A stretch of 64,000 bases of DNA from the NCBI RefSeq assembly GCF_016432865.1, contig NC_067399.1:499162001-499226000 (forward strand), read 5' to 3'. Position 1 is the first letter of the stretch; every line of letters starts with the position of its first letter. A program made the position numbers and the translations under genes. The stretch is from Antechinus flavipes (lineage: Eukaryota). The notes under the pieces are model-generated. The model had not been told where the DNA came from. It saw only the letters and a list, made by a program, of their open reading frames with translations, and did not search any database. Shown here in pieces: positions 15,701 through 30,418 of the stretch.

Positions 15701-16826
15701 TCAAAATGTGATGCAGTCATTCCAGTTCTTTTGGGCTTCCTCTGAAAGTGTGTTTCAAAGACAATTTTCCCAGAGGTAGTAATTTTAAAAATCCTGTACG
15801 TTTTCCCAGGCCAGAAGGTTATAATGACAACTTGGAAAGGGGGATGGTTACCTAATCTCATTCCAAATTCTCCCCATGAGTTACTCAGAGGAAAAAAATT
15901 ATCTACTCCCCTCCCATAATATTACCCCTACATGTGTGGGTCCTTCCACACATCCCTTCCAGCCCCCACCATCCTTAACTCTGGACCCCCAGATCTGGAT
16001 CTGAGGCAAAGGGAATCCCCTTCCCTCTTCCCCTCCCCTGCTAATGGAGGACAGGAAGAGTGTAGAACAGGCTGGAAGAGGTTTGGAAAGGGCCCGGAGG
16101 AAGTCCAGGACAGCGTCGGAATCCCACAGAGCGGGTGGGGCAGGCCTAACAGCTGGCTTGCCCAAGCCTTCACCTTGGGGCCCTTCTGGGGTATCCGAGT
16201 TTGGGGGAGTGGGGGTGGGGGGCTCCACGAGCGGCGACACAAGGAGGGGGGCATCTCCCTCCAGGCACCAGCTAGGGGAGCGGGGGGGGGGGGGGAGTGT
16301 AAGGCCTTTCCGGGAGGCCAACAGCTGGGCCTGACGTCACGAGCCTGAGCCCGGGCCCGGGGAGAGGGTGTCACGGGCCCAAAGTCACCAAGGGGGCGAC
16401 GGGAGAGGGGCGTGGGGCGTCAGGATTTTGAGGAAGTCCGGGGGGAGGGGGGGGGAGTTCGAGGCGCGGGACCTATGAGGTTCAAGAACGGAGACTTGCG
16501 AGACTGAAGTCGAGGACCCTGAGGGAATTAAGGAGAAGGAAGGGGGGGGGGGGGGGGGGGAGGGGGAGGGGAGGACGGGGTGCGCTTCAAAGACAGGCGA
16601 AGGAAACCTGAGGAGGATGAGGAGAACGATCTGAAGGGATCCGGAAGGGGATCTGTGAGGATCTGAGAGAACCAGGGAGAGGCTGGATCGGGGAGGGGGT
16701 CTGTCAGGGTCCAGGCGGCGGGGAAGGAAGGGGCGGGGCCGAGCCCGCGAGTGTAGGGGCCGCCTCAAGAGCGTTTACCTTCTTTTTGGCCGCGGCCAAT
16801 TTGCTCTGCCGGGTCTCGTCCGCCAT
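1..16826 (-). CDS. GOLGA2: Golgin subfamily A member 2 (GM130), cis-Golgi coiled-coil matrix protein; 27 exons, last exon truncated by the window edge
   Basis: Exons in transcript order: 16779-16826, 14924-15046, 14233-14313, 10641-10757, 10278-10321, 10099-10162, 8991-9050, 8724-8804, 7862-7900, 7661-7723, 7492-7585, 7198-7304, 6715-6773, 6193-6334, 5036-5125, 4834-4941, 4608-4695, 3370-3707, 2803-2916, 2047-2271, 1892-1967, 1536-1624, 1115-1321, 924-1026, 593-699, 279-447, 1-175. All are GT-AG with consistent phases, 3011 nt open. Peptide [23 protein letters not shown]...[16 protein letters not shown]...NPCIP matches GM130 as recalled. Confidence 0.97.
279..447 (-). CDS. GOLGA2: GOLGA2 exon 26
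   Basis: [27 protein letters not shown]...; cag/gtgagt. Confidence 0.95.
593..699 (-). CDS. GOLGA2: GOLGA2 exon 25
   Basis: [35 protein letters not shown]; cag/gttagc. Confidence 0.95.
924..1026 (-). CDS. GOLGA2: GOLGA2 exon 24
   Basis: [34 protein letters not shown]; tag/gtgagg. Confidence 0.95.
1115..1321 (-). CDS. GOLGA2: GOLGA2 exon 23
   Basis: [25 protein letters not shown]...[10 protein letters not shown]; cag/gtgagg. Confidence 0.95.
1536..1624 (-). CDS. GOLGA2: GOLGA2 exon 22
   Basis: [29 protein letters not shown]; cag/gtgagc. Confidence 0.93.
1892..1967 (-). CDS. GOLGA2: GOLGA2 exon 21
   Basis: [25 protein letters not shown]; cag/gtgagg. Confidence 0.93.
2047..2271 (-). CDS. 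GOLGA2: GOLGA2 exon 20
   Basis: [32 protein letters not shown]...ARQELLQTQ; tag/gtaaga. Confidence 0.95.
2803..2916 (-). CDS. GOLGA2: GOLGA2 exon 19
   Basis: [38 protein letters not shown]; cag/gtaatg. Confidence 0.95.
3141..3305 (+). mobile_element. MIR/CORE-SINE fragment (one of many in the window)
   Basis: ctggcactgtcacttactagct...caagtgactt...taaaatga...taagatcccttccag core pattern; boundaries approximate. Confidence 0.65.
3370..3707 (-). CDS. GOLGA2: GOLGA2 exon 18
   Basis: [24 protein letters not shown]...[30 protein letters not shown]; tag/gtacgt. Confidence 0.95.
4608..4695 (-). CDS. GOLGA2: GOLGA2 exon 17
   Basis: [29 protein letters not shown]; cag/gtaggc. Confidence 0.93.
4834..4941 (-). 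CDS. GOLGA2: GOLGA2 exon 16
   Basis: [36 protein letters not shown]; cag/gttggc. Confidence 0.93.
5036..5125 (-). CDS. GOLGA2: GOLGA2 exon 15
   Basis: [30 protein letters not shown]; cag/gtgagc. Confidence 0.93.
5370..5990 (+). mobile_element. CR1/L3 LINE 3' fragment, decayed
   Basis: catccagttctgggcaccacatt (QFWAPH) and ctagggatatttaacctggaaaaaagaaactgagaggggacatgatagctgtc ([18 protein letters not shown]), typical of the CR1 RT C-terminus. Confidence 0.75.
6193..6334 (-). CDS. GOLGA2: GOLGA2 exon 14
   Basis: [47 protein letters not shown]; cag/gtaaca. Confidence 0.94.
6715..6773 (-). CDS. GOLGA2: GOLGA2 exon 13
   Basis: [19 protein letters not shown]; cag/gttagt. Confidence 0.94.
7198..7304 (-). 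CDS. GOLGA2: GOLGA2 exon 12
   Basis: [35 protein letters not shown]; tag/gtgagc. Confidence 0.95.
7492..7585 (-). CDS. GOLGA2: GOLGA2 exon 11
   Basis: [31 protein letters not shown]; aag/gtagaa. Confidence 0.95.
7661..7723 (-). CDS. GOLGA2: GOLGA2 exon 10
   Basis: [21 protein letters not shown]; cag/gtaagt. Confidence 0.94.
7862..7900 (-). CDS. GOLGA2: GOLGA2 exon 9
   Basis: [13 protein letters not shown]; cag/gtaaaa. Confidence 0.92.
8724..8804 (-). CDS. GOLGA2: GOLGA2 exon 8 (81 nt, frame-preserving, likely cassette)
   Basis: [27 protein letters not shown]; cag/gtaaga. Confidence 0.93.
8991..9050 (-). CDS. GOLGA2: GOLGA2 exon 7
   Basis: [20 protein letters not shown]; cag/gtaagt. Confidence 0.93.
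9125..9216. repeat. Compound (CAGA/CA)n microsatellite
   Basis: Directly visible. Confidence 0.95.
9385..9573. mobile_element. hAT-Charlie type MITE (MER5-like)
   Basis: Termini cagaggttcttagcct...aggttgagtccctg; degenerate 8-bp TSD ctctaatt / ctctagtc. Confidence 0.75.
10099..10162 (-). CDS. GOLGA2: GOLGA2 exon 6
   Basis: [21 protein letters not shown]; cag/gtagca. Confidence 0.93.
10278..10321 (-). CDS. GOLGA2: GOLGA2 exon 5
   Basis: [14 protein letters not shown](K); cag/gtgagt; 44 nt, phase fits exon 6. Confidence 0.88.
10641..10757 (-). CDS. GOLGA2: GOLGA2 exon 4
   Basis: [39 protein letters not shown]; cag/gtttgt; divergent, but the position and the TSMASPQ end fit. Confidence 0.82.
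12720..12771. repeat. (CA)26 microsatellite
   Basis: Directly visible, perfect repeat. Confidence 0.97.
14233..14313 (-). CDS. GOLGA2: GOLGA2 exon 3 (81 nt, frame-preserving cassette)
   Basis: [27 protein letters not shown]; long pyrimidine tract with tag acceptor; gtgaga donor. Confidence 0.9.
14924..15046 (-). CDS. GOLGA2: GOLGA2 exon 2 (basic N-terminal region)
   Basis: [41 protein letters not shown]; cag/gtgagt. Confidence 0.95.
16779..16826 (-). CDS. GOLGA2: GOLGA2 exon 1 coding part from the second ATG
   Basis: ATG GCG in good Kozak context; [16 protein letters not shown] then gtaaac. The upstream ATG at 16863 is out of frame by 1 nt (see findings). Confidence 0.93.
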
Positions 16827-17182
16827 CCCGAGCCGGGGAGGGGGAAGGCGGGGGGGGCCACATCACCGTGATCCCGGCAACCACCGCGGCATTCCATCCA
16901 GCAGCCACCGCGCCGCTCCCGCTCCTCCCATAGGGAGGGTAAAGGGCGGGGTCGGACAGCGTCGCGCATCCCAGCGTCTGCGCCTGCGCCTGCGCCGATC
17001 TCTAGTACTCTCTCGCGCGCGCGTCGTCCAGCCCCGCCCGCGATGCTACTTGGCTCCAGCATTTCTATTCCTTCAGATTACACTCTGACTGGCGCGGGCT
17101 TTCCTACCTCCTCTGCGAGAGTGCGCTCGTCCTAGACCAGGAGCGAGCCTCGGCCTGCCCGCTTCTCTACTCCCTGGCAGTC

Positions 17183-17244
17183 CTGGAGTCCCACTCGCTG
17201 CAGAAACCCTCGGGAGGGGAGCCCAGGACCCCGGGCCTCCGGAG
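17183..17244 (+). CDS. SWI5: SWI5 exon 1 coding part (CUG start inferred)
   Basis: PRTPGLRR followed by the donor AG/gtgcga; CTG in the context gtcCTGg. Confidence 0.75.
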
Positions 17245-20200
17245 GTGCGACGGAGAAGAGTCTCCTCTTGGATCCCTCCCCAGAAATCCGGCATCCTTCA
17301 GAAAAACCCTCCTCAAGAGACCTCCGTCCCTTCCACGACCCGTCCTCCAAACTGAGCGCCTAGCACGGTCGCTGTTTCAGTGGGCGCTTAATAAGTGCTT
17401 GTTCTTCCTTTCCTACTCGCCCATCCTGAGCAGTCCCCATAGATCCTATCCACTTCAGAAACTTCCATCTCAAGATCCGATTCCTCCTTTAACAGACCGA
17501 CCTTCAGCGAATTCTTATCCTAGACCTCAATCCCCTTTAAAGAAACCAATTCAAGGATCCATCCCTTTCCATTGATACATTTTTCCCCCAGGGACCCTCG
17601 GCGCCTCTGAGACACCGCTTATGGATCTCTCCCCTTGGAGTAGACTCTCCTTATCCCTTCCCATCCCATCCCAAATGCCCTGGCCTGAACCACTTGGTCT
17701 AGTTTCCCTTTCCCACCTGTCTTCACTTCCAGAGGGCTCCCGGGCTTTCAAGTCTTCCCTCGCCCCGCAAATCCTGGGTCCTAACCATCCCTTTTCCTTG
17801 GTTGCTTTCCAGGGCACGATTGGGACTCTCCAAACGCCATTCAGCGGCTTTTCGATCCCCTGTGAGTATGTCTGCACGCACTCTTACATCCTTCTTTCCT
17901 CCTCGTGCCATACAGGTGGTATATCTTTCCCCAATCTCTCTGGGCCTCCTCAGTTACATCGCAGCAGTCTTTTTCTTGATCTCTTTGATTCTGTAATAGA
18001 AATTTTCACAGCATCTTTTCCAAATCTTTCCTTTTCTCATGCCTCTAGTGTCTTCTTCCACCTATACAACAAGATGTATGTTGCCATAATAAACATGTTG
18101 CTTATTAAATGTATGATGAAGTGAAGACTTATCTGCCTCCTACTTGTCTAAAGGTAACAGATCCAGGCAGGAAATCTGATGTTATTTCATGTAATTTCCA
18201 CTTATCTCAAAATAATTAGGTTAGCTTTGGACAGCACTTCATCTGAGTAAGGTGAGGATGACAAAACATAGAGGGAGAAATATTTTGAGATAAGTGGAAA
18301 TTACATGAAATAACATCAGATTTCCTGCCTGGATCTGTTACCTTTAGACAAGTAGGAGGCAGATAAGTCTTCACTTCATCATACATTTAATAAGCAACAT
18401 GTTTATTATGGCAACATACATCTTGTTGTATAGGTGGAAGAAGACACTAGAGGCATGAGAAAAGGAAAGATTTGGAAAAGATGCTGTGAAAATTTCTGTT
18501 ACAGAATCAAAGAGATCAAGAAAAAGACTGCTGTGATGTAACTTCCCTCTGCTTTCCTTAGAACCTTGTTCTATAATTTCTCTCTACAATTTTTACCTCC
18601 CAACTGGTTGCTTCCGCTCTACCTTTAAAAACACAGGTCTCCCCAATCTTGAGAGAGGAGAAAAATAGACAAAAAACTTTGTTTAATCCTACTGCCCCAC
18701 TAGTTACCATCCTATTTCTCCTTTACCATTTTTTGCCAAACCAACCTGCTGCCTTCATCACCCACTTGCACTTTAACTCTTGGCAGTCTTATTTCTGCCC
18801 TTTCTACTCATCCCCAGTGGCCTTTTTTTTTTTTAATCCTTCATTCTTCTTACCTCCTTGCAGAAATTCTTTGCTGCTTCCCTCATAGAACTCTCTTCCC
18901 ACTTTATGAGTTAATACTGTTCTGCTTTTTTCAATTACTTGACTATTCATTCCTCTGACTTCTTTTTCTAAATTCCCTATTCTTCTCTTTCTATACTTGA
19001 TAATTTACTCTGTGGTTTTCAATGGTCATTTCTTTTACTGCTTGGTCATCACTTATGCTAATGATTTCCAAATCTGTTTCTTTCATTCAGGCCTTTAATA
19101 TGAGTTTTACATTTCCAACTGCATCCTGGATATTTTTCCATTTAGTGTCTTGCTTTCATCTCACTAGTTACAATCACTGCATCTAAAACTGATCTCATCA
19201 GTTTTGTCTTGTCAGATTTGCGGCTTCTTCCTGACTTCCATGCAATCATCTGTGATCTTTCCCTCTCTCTTATCCCCAGGTTTCTCAGATTCTTTATGTT
19301 CTTCTTTGTAATGCCTTTCTTACCTGTCCCTTTTCATTTCCATTGAAACAGCTCTAGTTCAGGTTCTTAACCTCCTTATATATGAACTATTGGCCTCCTT
19401 ATTCTTATTATGTTTTCCCTCCAGCTCATCATTTACACTGTCATTTCCAGATTAATTTTGTTAAAACGCATCACATTACTCTCAAGCTCAAAGACCTTTA
19501 ATAACGCCTAAATAGCTAAAAGATCAGTTTGATACGCAGAAGCAACTTCTGAGCCAATTATATAAGACTTTATACAATCTGGTCTTGTTCTGCTTTTCTT
19601 TTTTTTAAATTGTAAGTTTATTTTTTCCTGAGACAATTGTATTTAGGTGACTTGCCCAGGGTCACACAGCTAGGTTAAATATCTGAGATCAGATTTGAAC
19701 TCAGATCCTCTTGACCTCAGGGCTAGTTCTCTATCCATTGTACACATAGCTGCCCCCTTATTCTACTTTTCCAATCTCATTTCTAAATGTTTCTTCCAGT
19801 CATGCTGGTTTCATTGTCCCCCCAAAATGCCAAGTTCATTTCCTTCTCTGTATTTACCCCAGCCTGGGATGCTCTTCCTTTTTATTTATCTGAATCCTAC
19901 TTTTTTTTTCCTTAAGAAAAAAAAGTTAATATTATCCCTAATTTTAAGGCAATTTCAGTAGAAGTTAGATTAGAAGCATTTTGTGATCTTTTTAAAAAAG
20001 CAAAATCATGGTGGCTAGCATTAATTAGTCCCAGGTCATTCTCATTTCTTTCTCAAAGCATTCAGTATTTAGCATATCCTCAAATCCCCTGATTTATCTC
20101 CAGGAATGGTTATCATTCTATCTCCATGCGTACCTTCACAATGAAAAGCTCTCATATTCCTCTTGTAGCCTATCATTCCATCTTTCCCTATATTTTACCC

Positions 20201-23200: not shown

Positions 23201-25410
23201 CTATCTCCCATCTCTGTACTTTTACACTGGCTGTCCTCCATGCCTGGAGTGCCAATCCATGACTTCTTTCAAAACTCAGTTCAAATGCCACCTTTTTTCA
23301 CAATTCTCTGCTAGCTGTTAATGCCTTCTCAGAGATTATACCTTCATTCTAGTGTGTAGGAGGTGGGGAAGGGCCTGTTTTTTGGTCCATTATAATTTCC
23401 TTTAGTAAATTAAATTTAACAGTCCTTCGTGACTGTTATTTAACTTTTAATCCCTGTTAGCATTCCCACTGTGCTTGGCATAAATCATCTAGTCTAATCT
23501 CATCATTTTATAGATAATTGAGGTCCAGAGATATCAAGGAGATATATGGGATAATCTATGGCAGTTCATTGAACCTCAAGGAATAATTTCATTATTCTTT
23601 GTCAAGAATTAGTTTTTCCTATTCTTCATCTTGAATTATCTTCTTCAATTCCTTCTGAATCATTCTAAGGACATGTTCCAGGGGGGCTACTCTTTAAACC
23701 TTAAGTCTCTCGCTTTCTTATTTTTCCTCCAAGCTGTCTCTAAGAAGAAAGAAAGACTAAAGAGGAAAGTACTGAAAAAACTCTAATCCCAACCCTTGTC
23801 ACTTGGTAGATAGAAAGGTAAAATTCTTATAGCACTTGAAGTTTTACAAAGTCCTTTCTTTACAACAATCCTGGGAAGTAGGTAGTGCAAACTGAGATAG
23901 AGGAATTGTTCTGGGATATCAGATGAGTTAAGGCTATGCATACAGCCTGAAAGTGTCAACTCTAAGCCAAGGGCCTTTCCACTGTACTATTCTGCTTTTG
24001 GCAGGAGAGAATTGGAAAGAGAACTCAGAAATTCAGTTGATATGGATACTAGAAGACTTATTATATTGGCAGATAGGTAGGTCAATACTCACATCTTTTC
24101 TTGTTATGCCATTTAGATGCCTACTCCCAAATTTGGCCAGGCTAATGAGACAAATGAGGAATCCCTAAGGCTGGAAATCCAGGAGCTAAAGCAAAAGAGA
24201 GATACCTTGGATCAAGAGATCTCCCAGTTGATGGCTGAGTACATTTATTACTAAATTTGTTGTGAAACACTTCACCTGTGTCTGGGATTTGTTTATTAAA
24301 TAACATAGTCCGAGGACCCACAATATACAAAGCATCATGTTAAGTGTTCAAAGGATGTTGTAAGAAGGAAGGAAGAATAGTAGCACAGATGTACATCATT
24401 TTACAGTTTATAAACATTAGTTTGAGGCTCACAAAACCTCAGTAAAGTTATAGTACAAACCTTAGTGTCCCGCTTTTATAGATAAAGAAGCTGGGAATCA
24501 GACAGACTTTCCCCGTGTTTTATAGCTAATAAGTAGCAGGGTCAGGACTAGAACCTCATTGTTTTCTGACTCTACATGTGGCCTCTGTGCTATACCACAT
24601 GATCTCTTCCATAGGGAATTTTCCAGTTTATGGAAGGAGGCCCAACCTCTTCCCTTGGGAATACTAATGGTGTGGTAACAAAACGCTAGACCTAACATTT
24701 GACTCTAGAACTAACTTGTTTTATCTGTCACACCTTCATTTTCCTTCTCTAAGAGGGTTGGACTAGATAATTGGAAAGGTTGATTCTACCTCTTAAATTC
24801 AATTATTGAACTAGGAGATACACACCTGAAAAAGATTGTAAGAATACTTACAAAATAGCATCATCAGGCATTTTGGGTACGAGGTTGAGACATAGGAGTT
24901 AGACTGTCATGAGTTTTACTCTTTGAATCGGTGGATTGAGAACTTTGTATTTCTAGAGTTCCTTTCCCTTGTAGAGTTCATAAAACTACTTAAACTTCAA
25001 AGAGTCTTTGGAAGGGAGCTCACAAATTTTGAAAATCAAATCAGTACCTTAACCTATATTTCACTAGCCTCTTAGAATCTATATTATTCCTTCCACCAAA
25101 AGTAAATAGTTTGTAGTTGTTTTTTTTTGTTATAATAAAAAAGAGGAGCGTGAAAAGAGCAGGGACCTAGGTGATAGAAAAGGCACCATTTACAAAGATA
25201 CCTCAAACTTCTATTTTAGTATTTAAGACCCTCTTGGAACTCTTTCCTAAGCTGCTTGTTGGATTAATATTGAATATGATAAATTGGCTAGCTTTTACTG
25301 TTTGAGTAAGAATTGATATTTGCATTCTATATAGATATCCATATTCATGTTGTACTCTCTCCCAAGTACACTATTTTTTAATGTTTTATTTTGACACAAG
25401 TTTCTTCCCT

Positions 25411-25445
<35 letters not shown>

Positions 25446-28400
25446 ATTCCTCCAGAACATTAGAGTGAACCTAATCCAGTGATTGATATTGATCTTGTCA
25501 CTTTCCTCTTTTGTCATTTATCAGTTAATAAAAAGGAAGAATCTATCCTTTAATAATTCTATACCAACATTGCTCATTGAATTTGACCCACAAATAAAGT
25601 ATATGACTTAACTTGGTGTTATTTTTGACATTGTTGTAGTCCCTATGTCCAGCGGTTTTGGCTATGCTTCTTTCATTTGGCATCATGCTTCCTGGACCTT
25701 CCCACACTTATATGAATTCTATGAATGATATCCATCATTCCTTATAGCATAATAACATTCCATGGTATTAATATAGTTTCTTTGTTCAGCTGTTGACCAC
25801 TTGTTGGGCACATATTTTGTTAGCAGCTTTTCTTATTACAGATAATGCTCTTACGAATACATTTGTTACTTAGAGATTGTTTCTCATTCACCCATTTGGA
25901 GTATAAATCCTACAGTGTGTTCCCTATGGCAGACTATAAACAGTTTAATCACTTTTCTTGCAGAGTTCTAAAGTGTTTTTCAAAACAGCACCATGTGGTG
26001 AAATAAATGTGAGATTTGACATCAGAAGATTGGAGTTCAAATGTGATCTGCCCATTCTGCTCTGTGCAACTATGGCCTACTCACTTCACTCCTTCTTTAA
26101 TTTCCCTCAATTATAAAATGAAAGTTGTACATATATAACCTATATCAAATTGCTTGCTGTCTTGGGGATGGGGAAAGGAGAAAAATCTAGAACTTAAAAT
26201 CTTACAAAAGTTTAATGTTGTAAACTATCTTTACATGTAATTGGAAAAAAAACTATTAAATTAAAAAAAGAGAGAGATGTCAGACTAAAGGATCTTTCAA
26301 TTCCCTGAATTTTTGAGCTTTCTCTACAAATAGTTAATGAGAAAAGCATAGCCCTCTCTTTCCTCCTTTGTTCTCACGCAATCCAACCCTAGTTTCTTTG
26401 CTGGGTAACAGTAAATCATATTTCTATAGCTTTTTAAAGACTTCCCTTACAAATTCACTGTAAAGTAGCCTGTATAAATATTAACACCATCTTATAGATA
26501 AGGAAACTGGTTCAGAGAAGTGTTTTGTCAGTGGTCACATAGCCAATAAATGTAGAACTGTTACTATCTAATTCCAATGCTTTATTCATGACCACCAAGC
26601 CCCTGTCTACATGTCATTTTACTTTAGGAGACATGTTATTCTAGATTTCTATTGCAATCTCTAATTTTTTTTTACAACTTTTCTATTATCTCCATGTCTT
26701 TCTGTGTTTCTCAGAGGCTATGTTGTATCTGAGTTGGACGACCACATTTCCCTGCTTCATGAATACAATGACATTAAAGATGTGGGCCAGATGTTAATGG
26801 GAAAATTAGGTGAGTGATTGGAAATTTCCTGAATTCAGATAGCACCTCTATCCTCTCCATATCCATTGTCTTTGTCTTTCCTAGAGTAATCCAATACTTT
26901 CAACTCTGTTGTCACTGCTTTGTGTATATTCTTCTAATTCCTTGTCTTTAACTCAATACCAGTTGCACATTTAAGAAGATTTTAGGGGCTTTTAGGTTGT
27001 GATAGATGTCTGTGATTTCCTTAAGTCTTAAATGGGGATAGTCTTTTGATAATTTCCTCACCCAACTCTGGTAGATAACTGAAGAGCTTTAAATGTTTCC
27101 AGTTGCTAACTTGTTAATGCAGCAACCTTAAAAAAAACAGAACAGCTCTTTTTTGCTCAATTATCCATTTTGTATCTACTAAGAATCTCTTTCTGTGGAA
27201 GCTTTTAGTCATAACTTGGGTGTCTATCTGGGATGACTAGGTATAATCCTGTATGGATGTAGAATAAAGCTATAGATGTGCTTTTAAATTCTTCTTAAAT
27301 TCCTTTTTAATTATGAACTCAACAGACATTTCAAGATACAGAGTAAAAGAGGCTCATATATGAAGCTGAACTTATTTTACATACATTTTTCAAAGTATGT
27401 ATTAAATTTAACAAGGTAGTATTTAATCATACTTTCCCTTTTTTTTTTTTTATAGCATTTCCATCACAACCCAAAAACACCCCCTAAAATGGAAGCTTTT
27501 CATTGTTATAAATGTAAACAAGCAAAATAAACCAACACGTTGGCCAAGTCTGGAAATGCATTTACCATTTTTCCATTATTTCTTTACTAAGGGAGATGAG
27601 ACCTGTTTCATGAAGTCTTTCCTCTTTCACTTTACATTACTGTAATCATCTTGTTAGTTGTTCTGATCCTATACAACTCACTATACATAAGATTGTATAA
27701 GTCTTCCCATATTTCTCGTTAATTCTTCACATTCCTAATTTCTTATGAGACAATAATACACTATTCCATTTTTGGAACATCATTTCATTCAGTCATTCCC
27801 CAAATGAAGAGCATCCAGTTTGTTTCAAGCTCTTTTCTTTTAAGCTCTTCTCCAACTTCATCTACAGTCTATCCTGTTGTATATACACAGAGAGCTATTT
27901 AGCAATTAATAATCATTTTAGATTGTTGTCAGAAGATCTGTTCACTTATTTTATGAGGGCTAGCAGAAGCCCATAGGTCTTTAAGGACAGTTCTGTGAAA
28001 CTTGGAGAATTTCCCTCTTACTATAGCTACGAAAAGGTACCCAATCTGATTCTCTTCTAATTTTTTTAATGATGTGATTTTTAATTGTCAGGTCTCTTAT
28101 CCATTTTGAACTTATACATTATATTGTAGACGTTAATTTAAACTTACTAAACTGCCTTCCAGTTCTTGTCAAATACTTCTCCCAAGTATTTTATGTTCTA
28201 TGGATTATTAAAATTGAGTTAAAAAACACATTTGCATATAGTCTGTTTCTAGATGCAATGTAATAGTCAATGGGGAAAATTTTTTTTGCATCAAGTATGT
28301 CTGATGCATACTTACATATCAGATATATATGTCTAATAATCAAGACATATAAGAAACTATCACAAATGTAGTATATAACTTAAGTCATTCCCCAAAGGAT

Positions 28401-30418
28401 ATGAATAGACATCAAGAGGAAAATTGCAAACAACCATGTGAATAATTGTTCCAAATAACTAATAATTAGAAGTGAAAATCAAAACAATTCTTAGGGTTTC
28501 ACCTCACATCCAAATATGATAAAAGATGGGAATAGTCAGTGTTGGAGGCTTTCAGAAAGAAAGGCATAAGAAAATACTTAATAAAGTTGTGAATTGATCT
28601 AATCAGTTTGGCAAACAGTTGGGATTATACTAAAAAAGTGACTAAAATAGTTGTATCCTTTGATCCAAAGAGACAAGTACTAATTACATACATGCCCCTT
28701 ATATATCAGTAATAAAACAAAAAAGCAACATATACATCAAAATGTTTATAGTAACTTTTTTTAAATAAAAGTTTTTTTCAGTCAGCAAAAATTTACTCTC
28801 ATTCCTACCCCAATCTCCATGTTCCATCTCCCACCCCCACTTCTTCTAATTGAAAACTAGAGGAAAACAAATTTCTATATTGGTCATATCCAAAAAAATA
28901 TTTATCTCATTCTGTACTCTTGAGTCTACCTCCTTGTCAGGAAGTAACATCATGTTTCATCATTAGTCCTCTGGAATCATGTTGGTCATTACTGTGGTAA
29001 AAATTCATAATTTCATTTGATTTTATCATGTTATATAAATTGTTCTCCTAACTTAATTCTGTATCAGTTCATGGAATTTTCCCTAGTTTTCTCTGAACAT
29101 CTCCTTCATTATTTCTTACAGCATAGTAGTGTTTCATCACATTTATATACCATAACTTTTCATCCATTTATGGGCATACCCTCAGATTGCTATGCTTTGC
29201 CCCTCAAAAAAAAACCTCTTAATATCTTTGTATAATTAGAGTTTGTTTTGGTTAGGGTCAATTCTTCCTTTGACCTATCTTCTTTTGAATTATTCTTCCC
29301 CTCTTTTTCTCCTTTCTGTTATTTTCTTCTTGAGAAGTAGCATTTTTCAAAGTAGCAAAGACCTGGAAACAGAGTTCCTGCCCATCCATTGAGGAATGGC
29401 TGAATACATTGTTTGTATATTAACATGATAGAATAATATTGCACTATAAGAAACAATGTCTATGAAGAATACAGAAAAGCAGGTTTATGAACTACAACAA
29501 AAGGAAGCAAGCAGAACCAGGGAAACACCGTGCAATAACAGTGAGAGAGAAAGAACAGTAAGAAATTAAGTGTAATATTATGAAATTATAGTGAACATAA
29601 CAGATTTGTTATCTTTATGTACAATCCAGTGTTTGCTACTAAAGTTCAAAAAAATTATAATGAACAAGTTGACCTCAAAGGAGAGATATGAGAATGCATT
29701 TCCTGACCTTTTTGGTGTGTGGAACAATACTGAATATAACATTTGACTGGATATGTTGGTTTTGTTTGGGGGATTCCCCCTTTTTTTATTCAGTTATAAG
29801 GGAGAGCTCTTTGATAAAGGGGATAAAGCCCTCTGGTATAAAAATATATTTTCTTTCATGCATTTTTTGGAACATGGCTGATGTGGAAATGTATTTTCCA
29901 TGACTGTAAGTTTTTATAACAGATTTTTTATTTTTTTCTCAGTGAAGAGGGGAAGAAGAGGGAGAGAATTTGGAATTGAAAGGGTAAATTGGAGGGAAAA
30001 AAGTGAATTGGGTGTCATCAGACCAGACTTCTTCCAAGAGGAGAATGCTGAGGTGTAATCTTTCAGTATTTGTGCATGGATGAGATGATGATCTGGGCCC
30101 AAAAGAAAAAAGAATTAAGAGCATAGAAATTGGTTTAACCTTGTAGGAAAGAGTCACAGGGAAAAATGAATGGAGTAAAAAATGTGAGGATTGATAAATG
30201 GAAGTCTTGAAACTTTAGGTGAAAAATTTGAATTTGACAAGATGGGTTTGAGGAGTTTGTGTTCAAAAATATCAGGTCATTTTCATGCCAGGATTTTGAC
30301 AGCATCTTCTTTCCTAATTTTCATTTCTCTCATGACATCATTCTGCTATTTTAGCCAGATCAGAGGTGTGACCACCAAGGAGCTGTATCCTGAATTTGAT
30401 CTGGATATGAATGACTAA
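17183..30418 (+). CDS. SWI5: DNA repair protein SWI5 homolog (SWI5-SFR1 complex); 5 exons, predicted CUG start
   Basis: Exons 17183-17244, 17813-17861, 24117-24238, 26715-26809, about 30355-30418. Peptide (L)ESHSLQKPSGGEPRTPGLRR-ARLGLSKRHSAAFRSP-MPTPKFGQANETNEESLRLEIQELKQKRDTLDQEISQLMAE-GYVVSELDDHISLLHEYNDIKDVGQMLMGKL-(AQ)IRGVTTKELYPEFDLDMND. The last exon is 1 nt short of frame as assembled. Confidence 0.92.
17813..17861 (+). CDS. SWI5: SWI5 exon 2
   Basis: ttgctttccag acceptor; ends AFRSP/gtgagt; 49 nt. Confidence 0.88.
17952..18543. repeat. 263-bp near-perfect inverted repeat with a 66-nt spacer
   Basis: Arms 17952-18214 and 18281-18543 checked base by base; only two mismatches (17961/18534 and 17997/18498). 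Confidence 0.98.
18550..19600 (+). mobile_element. L2 LINE fragment, decayed
   Basis: Pyrimidine-rich L2 hallmarks (accatcctatttctcctttacc; atgctaatgatttccaaatctg; atcactgcatctaaaactgatctcatc). Boundaries approximate. Confidence 0.6.
19621..19757 (-). mobile_element. Marsupial tRNA-derived SINE (WSINE1-like)
   Basis: Reverse complement of ggggcagcta...gagttcaaatctg...ctgtgtgaccctgggcaagtcac with an A tail. Confidence 0.85.
21010..22420. mobile_element. Cluster of L1 3'-end fragments in alternating orientation (about 21010-21200 minus, 21201-21830 plus, 21850-22420 minus)
   Basis: Marsupial L1 ORF2-end/3'UTR motifs (gagagcaatttggaactatg; atgaactgat...agtgaagtgaacagaaccaggaga). Confidence 0.75.
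22421..23400 (+). mobile_element. L2 LINE 3' fragment
   Basis: actcccatg...tatgcaaaagacttctagatctata; aaattcaacatgtctaaaacagaa; tcaaaactcagttcaaatgccacct. Confidence 0.7.
24117..24238 (+). CDS. SWI5: SWI5 exon 3
   Basis: ttag/ATG CCT ACT...EISQLMAE/gtacat; 122 nt. Confidence 0.93.
25415..25441. repeat. (CA)n microsatellite
   Basis: Directly visible. Confidence 0.95.
26715..26809 (+). CDS. SWI5: SWI5 exon 4 (Swi5 domain core)
   Basis: GYVVSELDDHISLLHEYNDIKDVGQMLMGKL; ctcag/gtgagt. Confidence 0.96.
27300..29900. mobile_element. Old L1 fragments, mixed orientation
   Basis: Decayed L1 ORF2 3' and UTR motifs (aaggatatgaatagaca; agaagtgaaaatcaaaacaa; ccattgaggaatggctgaata). Boundaries approximate. 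Confidence 0.6.
30355..30418 (+). CDS. SWI5: SWI5 exon 5 (last coding exon)
   Basis: QIRGVTTKELYPEFDLDMND* is the SWI5 C-terminus; junction phase is off by 1 nt. Confidence 0.88.

Follow-up and report, generated by a model that had tools for sequence, protein, structure and literature searches.

The question raised by this locus is where translation begins on the SWI5 mRNA of the marsupial Antechinus flavipes, the first two exons of which contain no in-frame AUG. The DNA analyzed, referred to here as the window, is a stretch of 64,000 nucleotides, and all positions are given in its numbering. From an earlier sequence-only reading of the window it had been proposed that SWI5 is initiated at a conserved CUG in exon 1. 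The comparisons described here make it probable that the codon at 17183-17185 is the ancestral translation start of mammalian SWI5 and that, in antechinus, initiation most likely takes place there at CUG.

The SWI5 Locus and Its Exons

SWI5 is encoded by the plus strand and GOLGA2 by the minus strand, the two genes forming a head-to-head pair on a CpG island, with a GC content of 0.66-0.67 across window positions 16000-17000. The coding part of GOLGA2 exon 1, recognized by its translation, occupies 16776-16826 on the minus strand and is followed by a GT donor; because the GOLGA2 ATG is only 356 nt from the SWI5 CTG, the two genes appear to have a common CpG-island promoter. The head-to-head order is kept in all 11 of the mammalian loci that were fetched, and the minus-strand gene matches the GOLGA2L5/GM130_C Pfam families. 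Exon 4 of SWI5 alone matches the Pfam family PF07061 (Swi5) with a score of 47.2 bits, against a cut-off of 22.1, and an E-value of 2.4e-12, and the wombat orthologue matches PF07061 over residues 54-129 (90.8 bits, E = 6e-26). By homology and gene order, with a Swi5 domain above the Pfam gathering threshold and synteny with GOLGA2, the gene is the mammalian SWI5 orthologue, encoding a small RAD51 cofactor of the Swi5/Sae3 family. A Pfam search with the exon-1 peptide of antechinus SWI5 matched no family.

The exon model was taken from the window sequence together with orthologues, and all exons are on the plus strand. The coding part of exon 1 (LESHSLQKPSGGEPRTPGLR plus 2 nt) extends from 17183 to 17244 and is followed by the donor GT at 17245-17246, the sequence immediately after position 17244 being GTGCGA. 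Exon 2 (17813-17861, 49 nt) is bounded by an AG acceptor and a GT donor, both of which are found in all of the species compared; it completes an Arg codon and then encodes ARLGLSKRHSAAFRSP, contains no ATG, and continues the exon-1 frame. Exon 3 (24117-24238, 122 nt) is in the same frame as exon 2, and its first codon is an ATG, at 24117-24119. The core of the Swi5 domain, as defined by PF07061, is encoded by exon 4 (26715-26809), and comparison with orthologues places exon 5 at 30355-30418, with a TAA stop codon at 30416-30418.

The Region of the Proposed Start Codon in Antechinus

The SWI5 frame is closed upstream by an in-frame TAG on the plus strand at 17003-17005, found with a script run on the window; this stop codon and the CTG at 17183-17185 are in one frame and are 180 nt apart. 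None of the 80 in-frame codons in exon 1 between 17003 and 17242 is ATG, in agreement with the sequence-only reading, which had found no in-frame ATG between the TAG and the exon-1 donor. The proposed CUG start codon, at 17183-17185 on the plus strand, lies in the context gcagtcCTGgag, with G at both −3 and +4, and its description as a strong Kozak context is correct. The count of 13 codons ahead of PRTPGLRR is likewise reproduced, as the CTG plus 12 codons (LESHSLQKPSGGE; the residues after the CTG are also given as ESHSLQKPSGGE). Exon 1 of antechinus contains further in-frame near-cognate codons, namely CTG at 17174, CTG at 17198, and AGG at 17225.

The sole ATG in exon 1 opens an out-of-frame uORF of 30 codons on the plus strand (17043-17135), which stops 48 nt before the CUG. 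This ATG at 17043 is specific to antechinus, being ACG in the devil and Sminthopsis, and the uORF is relevant only if transcription starts upstream of 17043. It should be recognized that the open frame of exon 1 is by itself weak evidence for translation, because GC-rich exons seldom contain stop codons; what rises above chance, on comparison of the sequences, is the pattern across species and not the open frame. RNA structure on the 3′ side of the CUG was considered as support and was discarded, as the predicted fold of 17160-17244 is no better than those of shuffled sequences (z = −1.0) and no special structure was found downstream of the CUG in this interval.

Comparison of the Proposed Start Codon across Mammals

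Marsupial SWI5 proteins were identified through a search with the last-exon frame, and the 130-residue wombat protein, used as a query, gave 236 homologues. Genomic loci were compared for 11 other mammals: wombat, Dromiciops, Gracilinanus, devil, Sminthopsis, Petaurus, platypus, elephant, European hare, gray whale, and a Bos hybrid. The homologous codon was defined as that 16 codons ahead of the Pro of PGLRR, or nine codons in platypus. This codon is CTG in nine of the 11 (devil, Sminthopsis, Dromiciops, Gracilinanus, Petaurus, platypus, elephant, gray whale, and Bos) and ATG in the remaining two, wombat and European hare (Lepus europaeus), so that with antechinus included the counts are 10 and two of 12. 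No other leucine codon occurs at this position in the 11 other mammals, although leucine codons elsewhere in exon 1 vary synonymously. The nucleotide at +4 is G in 12 of 12 mammals, and the sequence xTGGA is invariant; position −3 is a G or A in 11 of 12, with A in the elephant, C in the hare, where the start codon is ATG, and G in the others. In marsupials other than antechinus, the start codon is preceded by GCAGCC, and the spacing between the start codon and PGLRR is identical in all therians. In platypus the CTG and its context (gcgCTGgat) are retained, and there is a 21-nt in-frame deletion within the coding part of exon 1.

These results bear on the proposal, made from the antechinus sequence, that a non-AUG start is conserved between marsupials and placentals. 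Conservation of the CTG across marsupials, which had been put forward as a check, is observed in five of the six other species, the wombat having ATG at the same codon; CTG is also present in elephant, gray whale, and Bos, as well as in platypus, with ATG in the hare, and the proposal is therefore supported. Among 75 database SWI5 proteins that read through the position, the residue is Leu in 63 and Met in eight, and all eight of the proteins with Met start exactly there. Between the upstream stop codon and the conserved region, there is no in-frame AUG in antechinus, devil, Sminthopsis, Dromiciops, Gracilinanus, Petaurus, gray whale, or Bos. The wombat and Lepus europaeus codons represent two independent changes of CTG to ATG; the rabbit and pika proteins still have Leu. 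Database models from Tenrec, Echinops, and Elephantulus begin at a Met four codons downstream of the CTG position, and those from lemurs at a Met 11 codons upstream of it.

The human side of the comparison consists of proteins from non-human primates together with a published human peptide, and a cluster represented by a bonobo sequence, which probably contains the human 235-residue form, was used as a protein. The human N terminus given in the earlier reading agrees with the bonobo-represented cluster, with the macaque, mandrill, and Aotus proteins, and with the published peptide MDPLAPLNPLIR. However, the view that the residues between the start and the conserved region have diverged needs to be modified, as marsupial LEPRALQRPSGGEPGTPGLRR and placental LDPPALQTPPRRGPRTPGLRR are about half identical and so are not very diverged.

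Coding Signal Downstream and Its Upstream Boundary

For the analysis of coding signal, the extension was defined as the sequence running from the start codon through exon 2; marsupial counts are over seven marsupials, and substitutions were counted by script. The extension is 111 nt long in all therians and 21 nt shorter, in frame, in platypus. Within the 111 nt, the numbers of variable sites at codon positions 1, 2, and 3 among the seven marsupials are 9, 3, and 18, respectively (chi-square p = 0.003), and pN/pS, summed over species pairs, comes to 0.28 in the proposed frame, as compared with 0.76 and 2.71 in the shifted frames. There are no indels among the seven marsupials in the extension and no ATG, in any frame, in the extension of any of them. 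For exon 1 alone, the corresponding numbers of variable sites, 6, 3, and 9, give a weak and underpowered test (p = 0.11), much of the codon-position signal coming from exon 2. The exon-2 peptide is recognizable as far as turtles, in which the N terminus of SWI5 is longer and AUG-started. By these measures of substitution and length, the stretch from the CTG to the end of exon 2 evolves as protein-coding sequence in marsupials.

The sequences on the two sides of the codon differ sharply among the seven marsupials: in the 62 alignment columns from the start codon to the donor, 43 are invariant and none is gapped, whereas the 62 columns upstream of the start codon include only 16 invariant and 25 gapped ones. 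The upstream indels, of 1 nt (dasyurids versus the rest), 6 nt, and 13 nt, are reported as frame-breaking, and Sminthopsis has an in-frame stop eight codons upstream of the CTG. From the upstream gaps, the indels, and the Sminthopsis stop, it follows that the conserved frame starts no more than a few codons away from 17183.

The ATG of Exon 3 and the Predicted Products

Exon 3 opens with ATG in antechinus only; all six of the remaining marsupials have GTG in this position, the platypus has CTG, and the elephant and whale have CGG. In the antechinus SWI5 mRNA, no in-frame AUG precedes that at 24117-24119, which is located 37 codons after the CUG. It had been regarded as a conventional alternative start, a view that is not sustained by its restriction to antechinus, where it is a novelty. 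The next in-frame ATG of these six marsupials falls within the Swi5 domain (in QLM), as it also does in the platypus, elephant, and whale, and a full Swi5 domain therefore needs an upstream non-AUG start or, in the wombat, the ATG that replaces it. The expected length of 130 residues, once the defect in the last exon discussed below is corrected, is borne out by exon arithmetic (37 + 40 + 1 + 31 + 1 + 20 codons), and this corrected antechinus length equals those of the wombat, hare, cattle, and Panthera proteins.

In the mechanism that we favor, a scanning 43S complex would meet no in-frame AUG in exons 1 and 2, and Met-tRNAi would most likely initiate at the CUG at 17183, aided by its Kozak-type context. 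The product would be a 130-residue protein in which the Swi5 domain comes after the first 37 residues, encoded by exon 1 from the CUG and by exon 2. In antechinus, what appears to be a recent change of GTG to ATG at the first codon of exon 3 would add an in-frame AUG, and ribosomes that scan past the CUG would be expected also to yield a 93-residue form, giving two proteoforms of 130 and 93 residues. Given this usable in-frame AUG, antechinus may no longer need the CUG.

In antechinus, the CUG is presumably included in the mRNA and used for initiation. An indirect indication of where transcription starts is given by the 5′-partial models of NCBI, which usually open with the first nucleotide of the modeled transcript: in Dromiciops, Gracilinanus, and Petaurus, they start 114-130 nt upstream of the CTG. 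One partial NCBI model for the devil, in which exon 3 is skipped and the frame is different, begins 19 nt downstream of the CTG.

If exons 1 and 2 of antechinus were instead an ordinary 5′ UTR, the only protein would be the 93-residue form initiated at the exon-3 AUG (24117), and the similarity in exon 1 would reflect constraint on a promoter or UTR. The AUG at 24117 is indeed the first in frame and is in frame with the Swi5 domain, GC-rich leaders are often open by chance, and an AUG-initiated 89-residue form of the mouse protein complements Swi5−/− cells, indicating that the extension is dispensable in that assay (PMC2954829). However, the exon-3 ATG is missing in the six other marsupials, in platypus, and in placentals, and after splicing the context of the antechinus AUG is weak, with C at −3 and C at +4. 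A UTR would also have to account for the third-position bias, the pN/pS of 0.28, the complete lack of indels, and the conserved length of the extension, and for an exon-2 peptide that is kept as far as turtles. This explanation is considered to be unlikely.

Initiation might also take place at a different near-cognate codon, the CTG at 17174 (three codons upstream) or that at 17198 (five codons downstream), either alone or together with 17183. Both are in frame, and the CTG at 17198 (−11 codons) is found in most species and that at 17174 (−19 codons) in the three dasyurids. However, the CTG at 17174 has T at −3, does not occur outside the dasyurids, and is at the boundary of a 1-nt indel, whereas for that at 17198 the context is T at −3 with C at +4, Petaurus has CTT in its place, and neither Lepus nor platypus has retained it; moreover, it is at the position of 17183 that the wombat and hare have ATG and that the human peptide starts. 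A start at one of these codons thus has only a small probability. A main product initiated at an AUG that is supplied by an alternative first exon, as for the mouse 121-residue and primate MGEG... forms, which would reduce the exon-1 frame to a minor isoform, is very improbable: mouse cDNAs with alternative first exons are known (PMC2954829), many database models have other N termini, and the NCBI Sminthopsis model begins at an intron-1 ATG that is homologous to the window ORF at 17621, but such N termini are not conserved between orders, the intron-1 ORFs of antechinus and Sminthopsis diverge in frame after about 21 residues, and both AUG-initiated mouse forms ran smaller than the endogenous protein (PMC2954829).

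Initiation at the CUG of 17183 in antechinus may be part of a wider pattern. A more tentative reading, toward which we incline less than not, is that SWI5 is obligately non-AUG-initiated in all three mammalian lineages and that the strength of its start has been repeatedly re-tuned, which would point to control of the dosage or the proteoforms of a RAD51 cofactor. The start would be obligate in that, in most species, no AUG would give a complete Swi5 domain. Possible instances of re-tuning would be the replacement of CUG by AUG in the wombat and European hare, the nearby AUGs in tenrecs, sengis, and lemurs, and the downstream AUG in antechinus.

Relationship to Known Non-AUG Starts

Previously, Akamatsu and Jasin (2010; PMC2954829) found that endogenous mouse Swi5 runs above the AUG-initiated forms of 89 and 121 residues and suggested the use of a non-AUG codon. 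The mouse and antechinus genes are alike in this respect, the endogenous mouse protein exceeding in size any AUG-initiated cDNA product, with a non-AUG start proposed, but in that study the mouse start codon was unmapped. The codon homologous to 17183 is a candidate answer to this puzzle of 2010, in which endogenous mouse Swi5 was larger than the cDNA products (PMC2954829).

For the human gene, Supplementary Data 3 of Fedorova et al. (2022; PMC9789052) lists NM_001040011, SWI5, with start codon CTG, the peptide MDPLAPLNPLIR, position +196, and the class n-term-trunc. This is an N-terminal peptide, with Met at the same CUG that was named in the sequence-only reading, where it had been suggested that the human CUG start may already be annotated. 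The human CUG is in the same gene and at the same codon position as that of antechinus, 15 residues before TPGLRR, and is followed by Asp/Glu; as in antechinus, it has a purine at −3, G at +4, and the same downstream frame. The two differ in that human SWI5 has an annotated upstream in-frame AUG (235 residues), so that its CUG is classed as a truncation, whereas the antechinus gene has a stop codon at 17003 and no upstream AUG, has acquired a new AUG in exon 3, and has a start that is predicted from sequence. It should be noted that the sheet containing this SWI5 row is labeled “Overlap with Yeom et al” and is headed PMC4014282 (Van Damme et al., 2014), and that its gene list fits the account of the latter study in the text of the paper; two sheet labels appear to have been swapped. 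In the literature searched, an explicit statement of a CUG start for SWI5 was matched in no main text and in one supplementary table row only. SWI5 was not found in those supplements of Yeom et al. that were examined, nor in the main text of Ivanov et al. (2011; PMC3105428), and no human 130-residue SWI5 entry was listed in a search with a New World monkey query.

Database entries for several placentals already begin at this codon. The 130-residue cattle protein G5E6J4_BOVIN in UniProt has Met where the Bos DNA reads CTG and offers no in-frame ATG farther upstream, and both this entry and Panthera A0A8C8XXS7 (also 130 residues) begin exactly at the CTG-homologous codon, although they are models and not experiments. 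Capra A0A8C2SF78 is a further model with Met at the CTG position, but it is a 176-residue splice variant. The residue at this position differs between goat models, being Met or Leu, and similarly is Met in Panthera and Leu in Lynx. The Met in the cattle, goat, and Panthera models presumably reflects existing annotation of a non-ATG start. Elsewhere, many NCBI models of SWI5 are labeled partial or are begun at unrelated upstream ATGs; that for Petaurus makes use of a GGTGAG splice donor on the 5′ side of the CTG. The discordant 5′ ends of the NCBI models for Petaurus, devil, and Sminthopsis look like pipeline work-arounds for a missing AUG.

Among conserved non-AUG extensions described previously (PMC3105428; MYC, TEAD1, and EIF4G2), the arrangement is similar to that in SWI5: coding-type conservation ends on its 5′ side at a near-cognate codon in good context, and no in-frame AUG lies upstream. 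SWI5 differs in that most species lack the downstream AUG, and the CUG would therefore be the main start as opposed to an optional extension.

The CUG start of SWI5 is thus not new for placentals, having been seen in human N-terminal proteomics and being implied by the cattle and goat models. What is new, from the genomic comparison, is its apparent conservation in marsupials and a monotreme, the exchange of CUG and AUG at one codon, and a possible second start that is specific to antechinus. A start at this codon would give the correct protein for a DNA-repair gene that is mishandled by annotation pipelines, with a 37-residue N-terminal part that has probably been under selection since before the divergence of monotremes and therians, and for studies of translation, SWI5 would offer, at a single codon, a clean series of natural exchanges between CUG and AUG. 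In the antechinus genome, SWI5 should probably be annotated as beginning at 17183.

The Last Exon and Minor Features of the Window

The antechinus assembly does not carry an intact SWI5 frame through the last exon. In exon 5, at window positions 30355-30362, one G is missing next to 30358, the sequence being CCAGATC as compared with CCAGGATC in the devil and Sminthopsis. The resulting frameshift precedes the conserved IRGVTTKELYPEF tail, and the other 57 coding nucleotides are identical to those of the devil. We consider the missing G more likely to reflect an error of assembly than a real, very recent lesion; if the frameshift is real, SWI5 would be broken in the sequenced animal.

Two other features are found near the start of the gene pair. 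On the plus strand at 16540-16570, within the first intron of GOLGA2, there is a run of more than 20 G with GGGGA repeats. Just 5′ of SWI5 exon 1, at 16981-17041, there are tandem TGCGCC repeats (CTGCGCCTGCGCCTGCGCC), of which other marsupials have one unit fewer; these repeats are kept among marsupials together with a CCCCGCCC box, and we take the two, from their resemblance, to be NRF1-like and Sp1-like elements of the common GOLGA2/SWI5 promoter.
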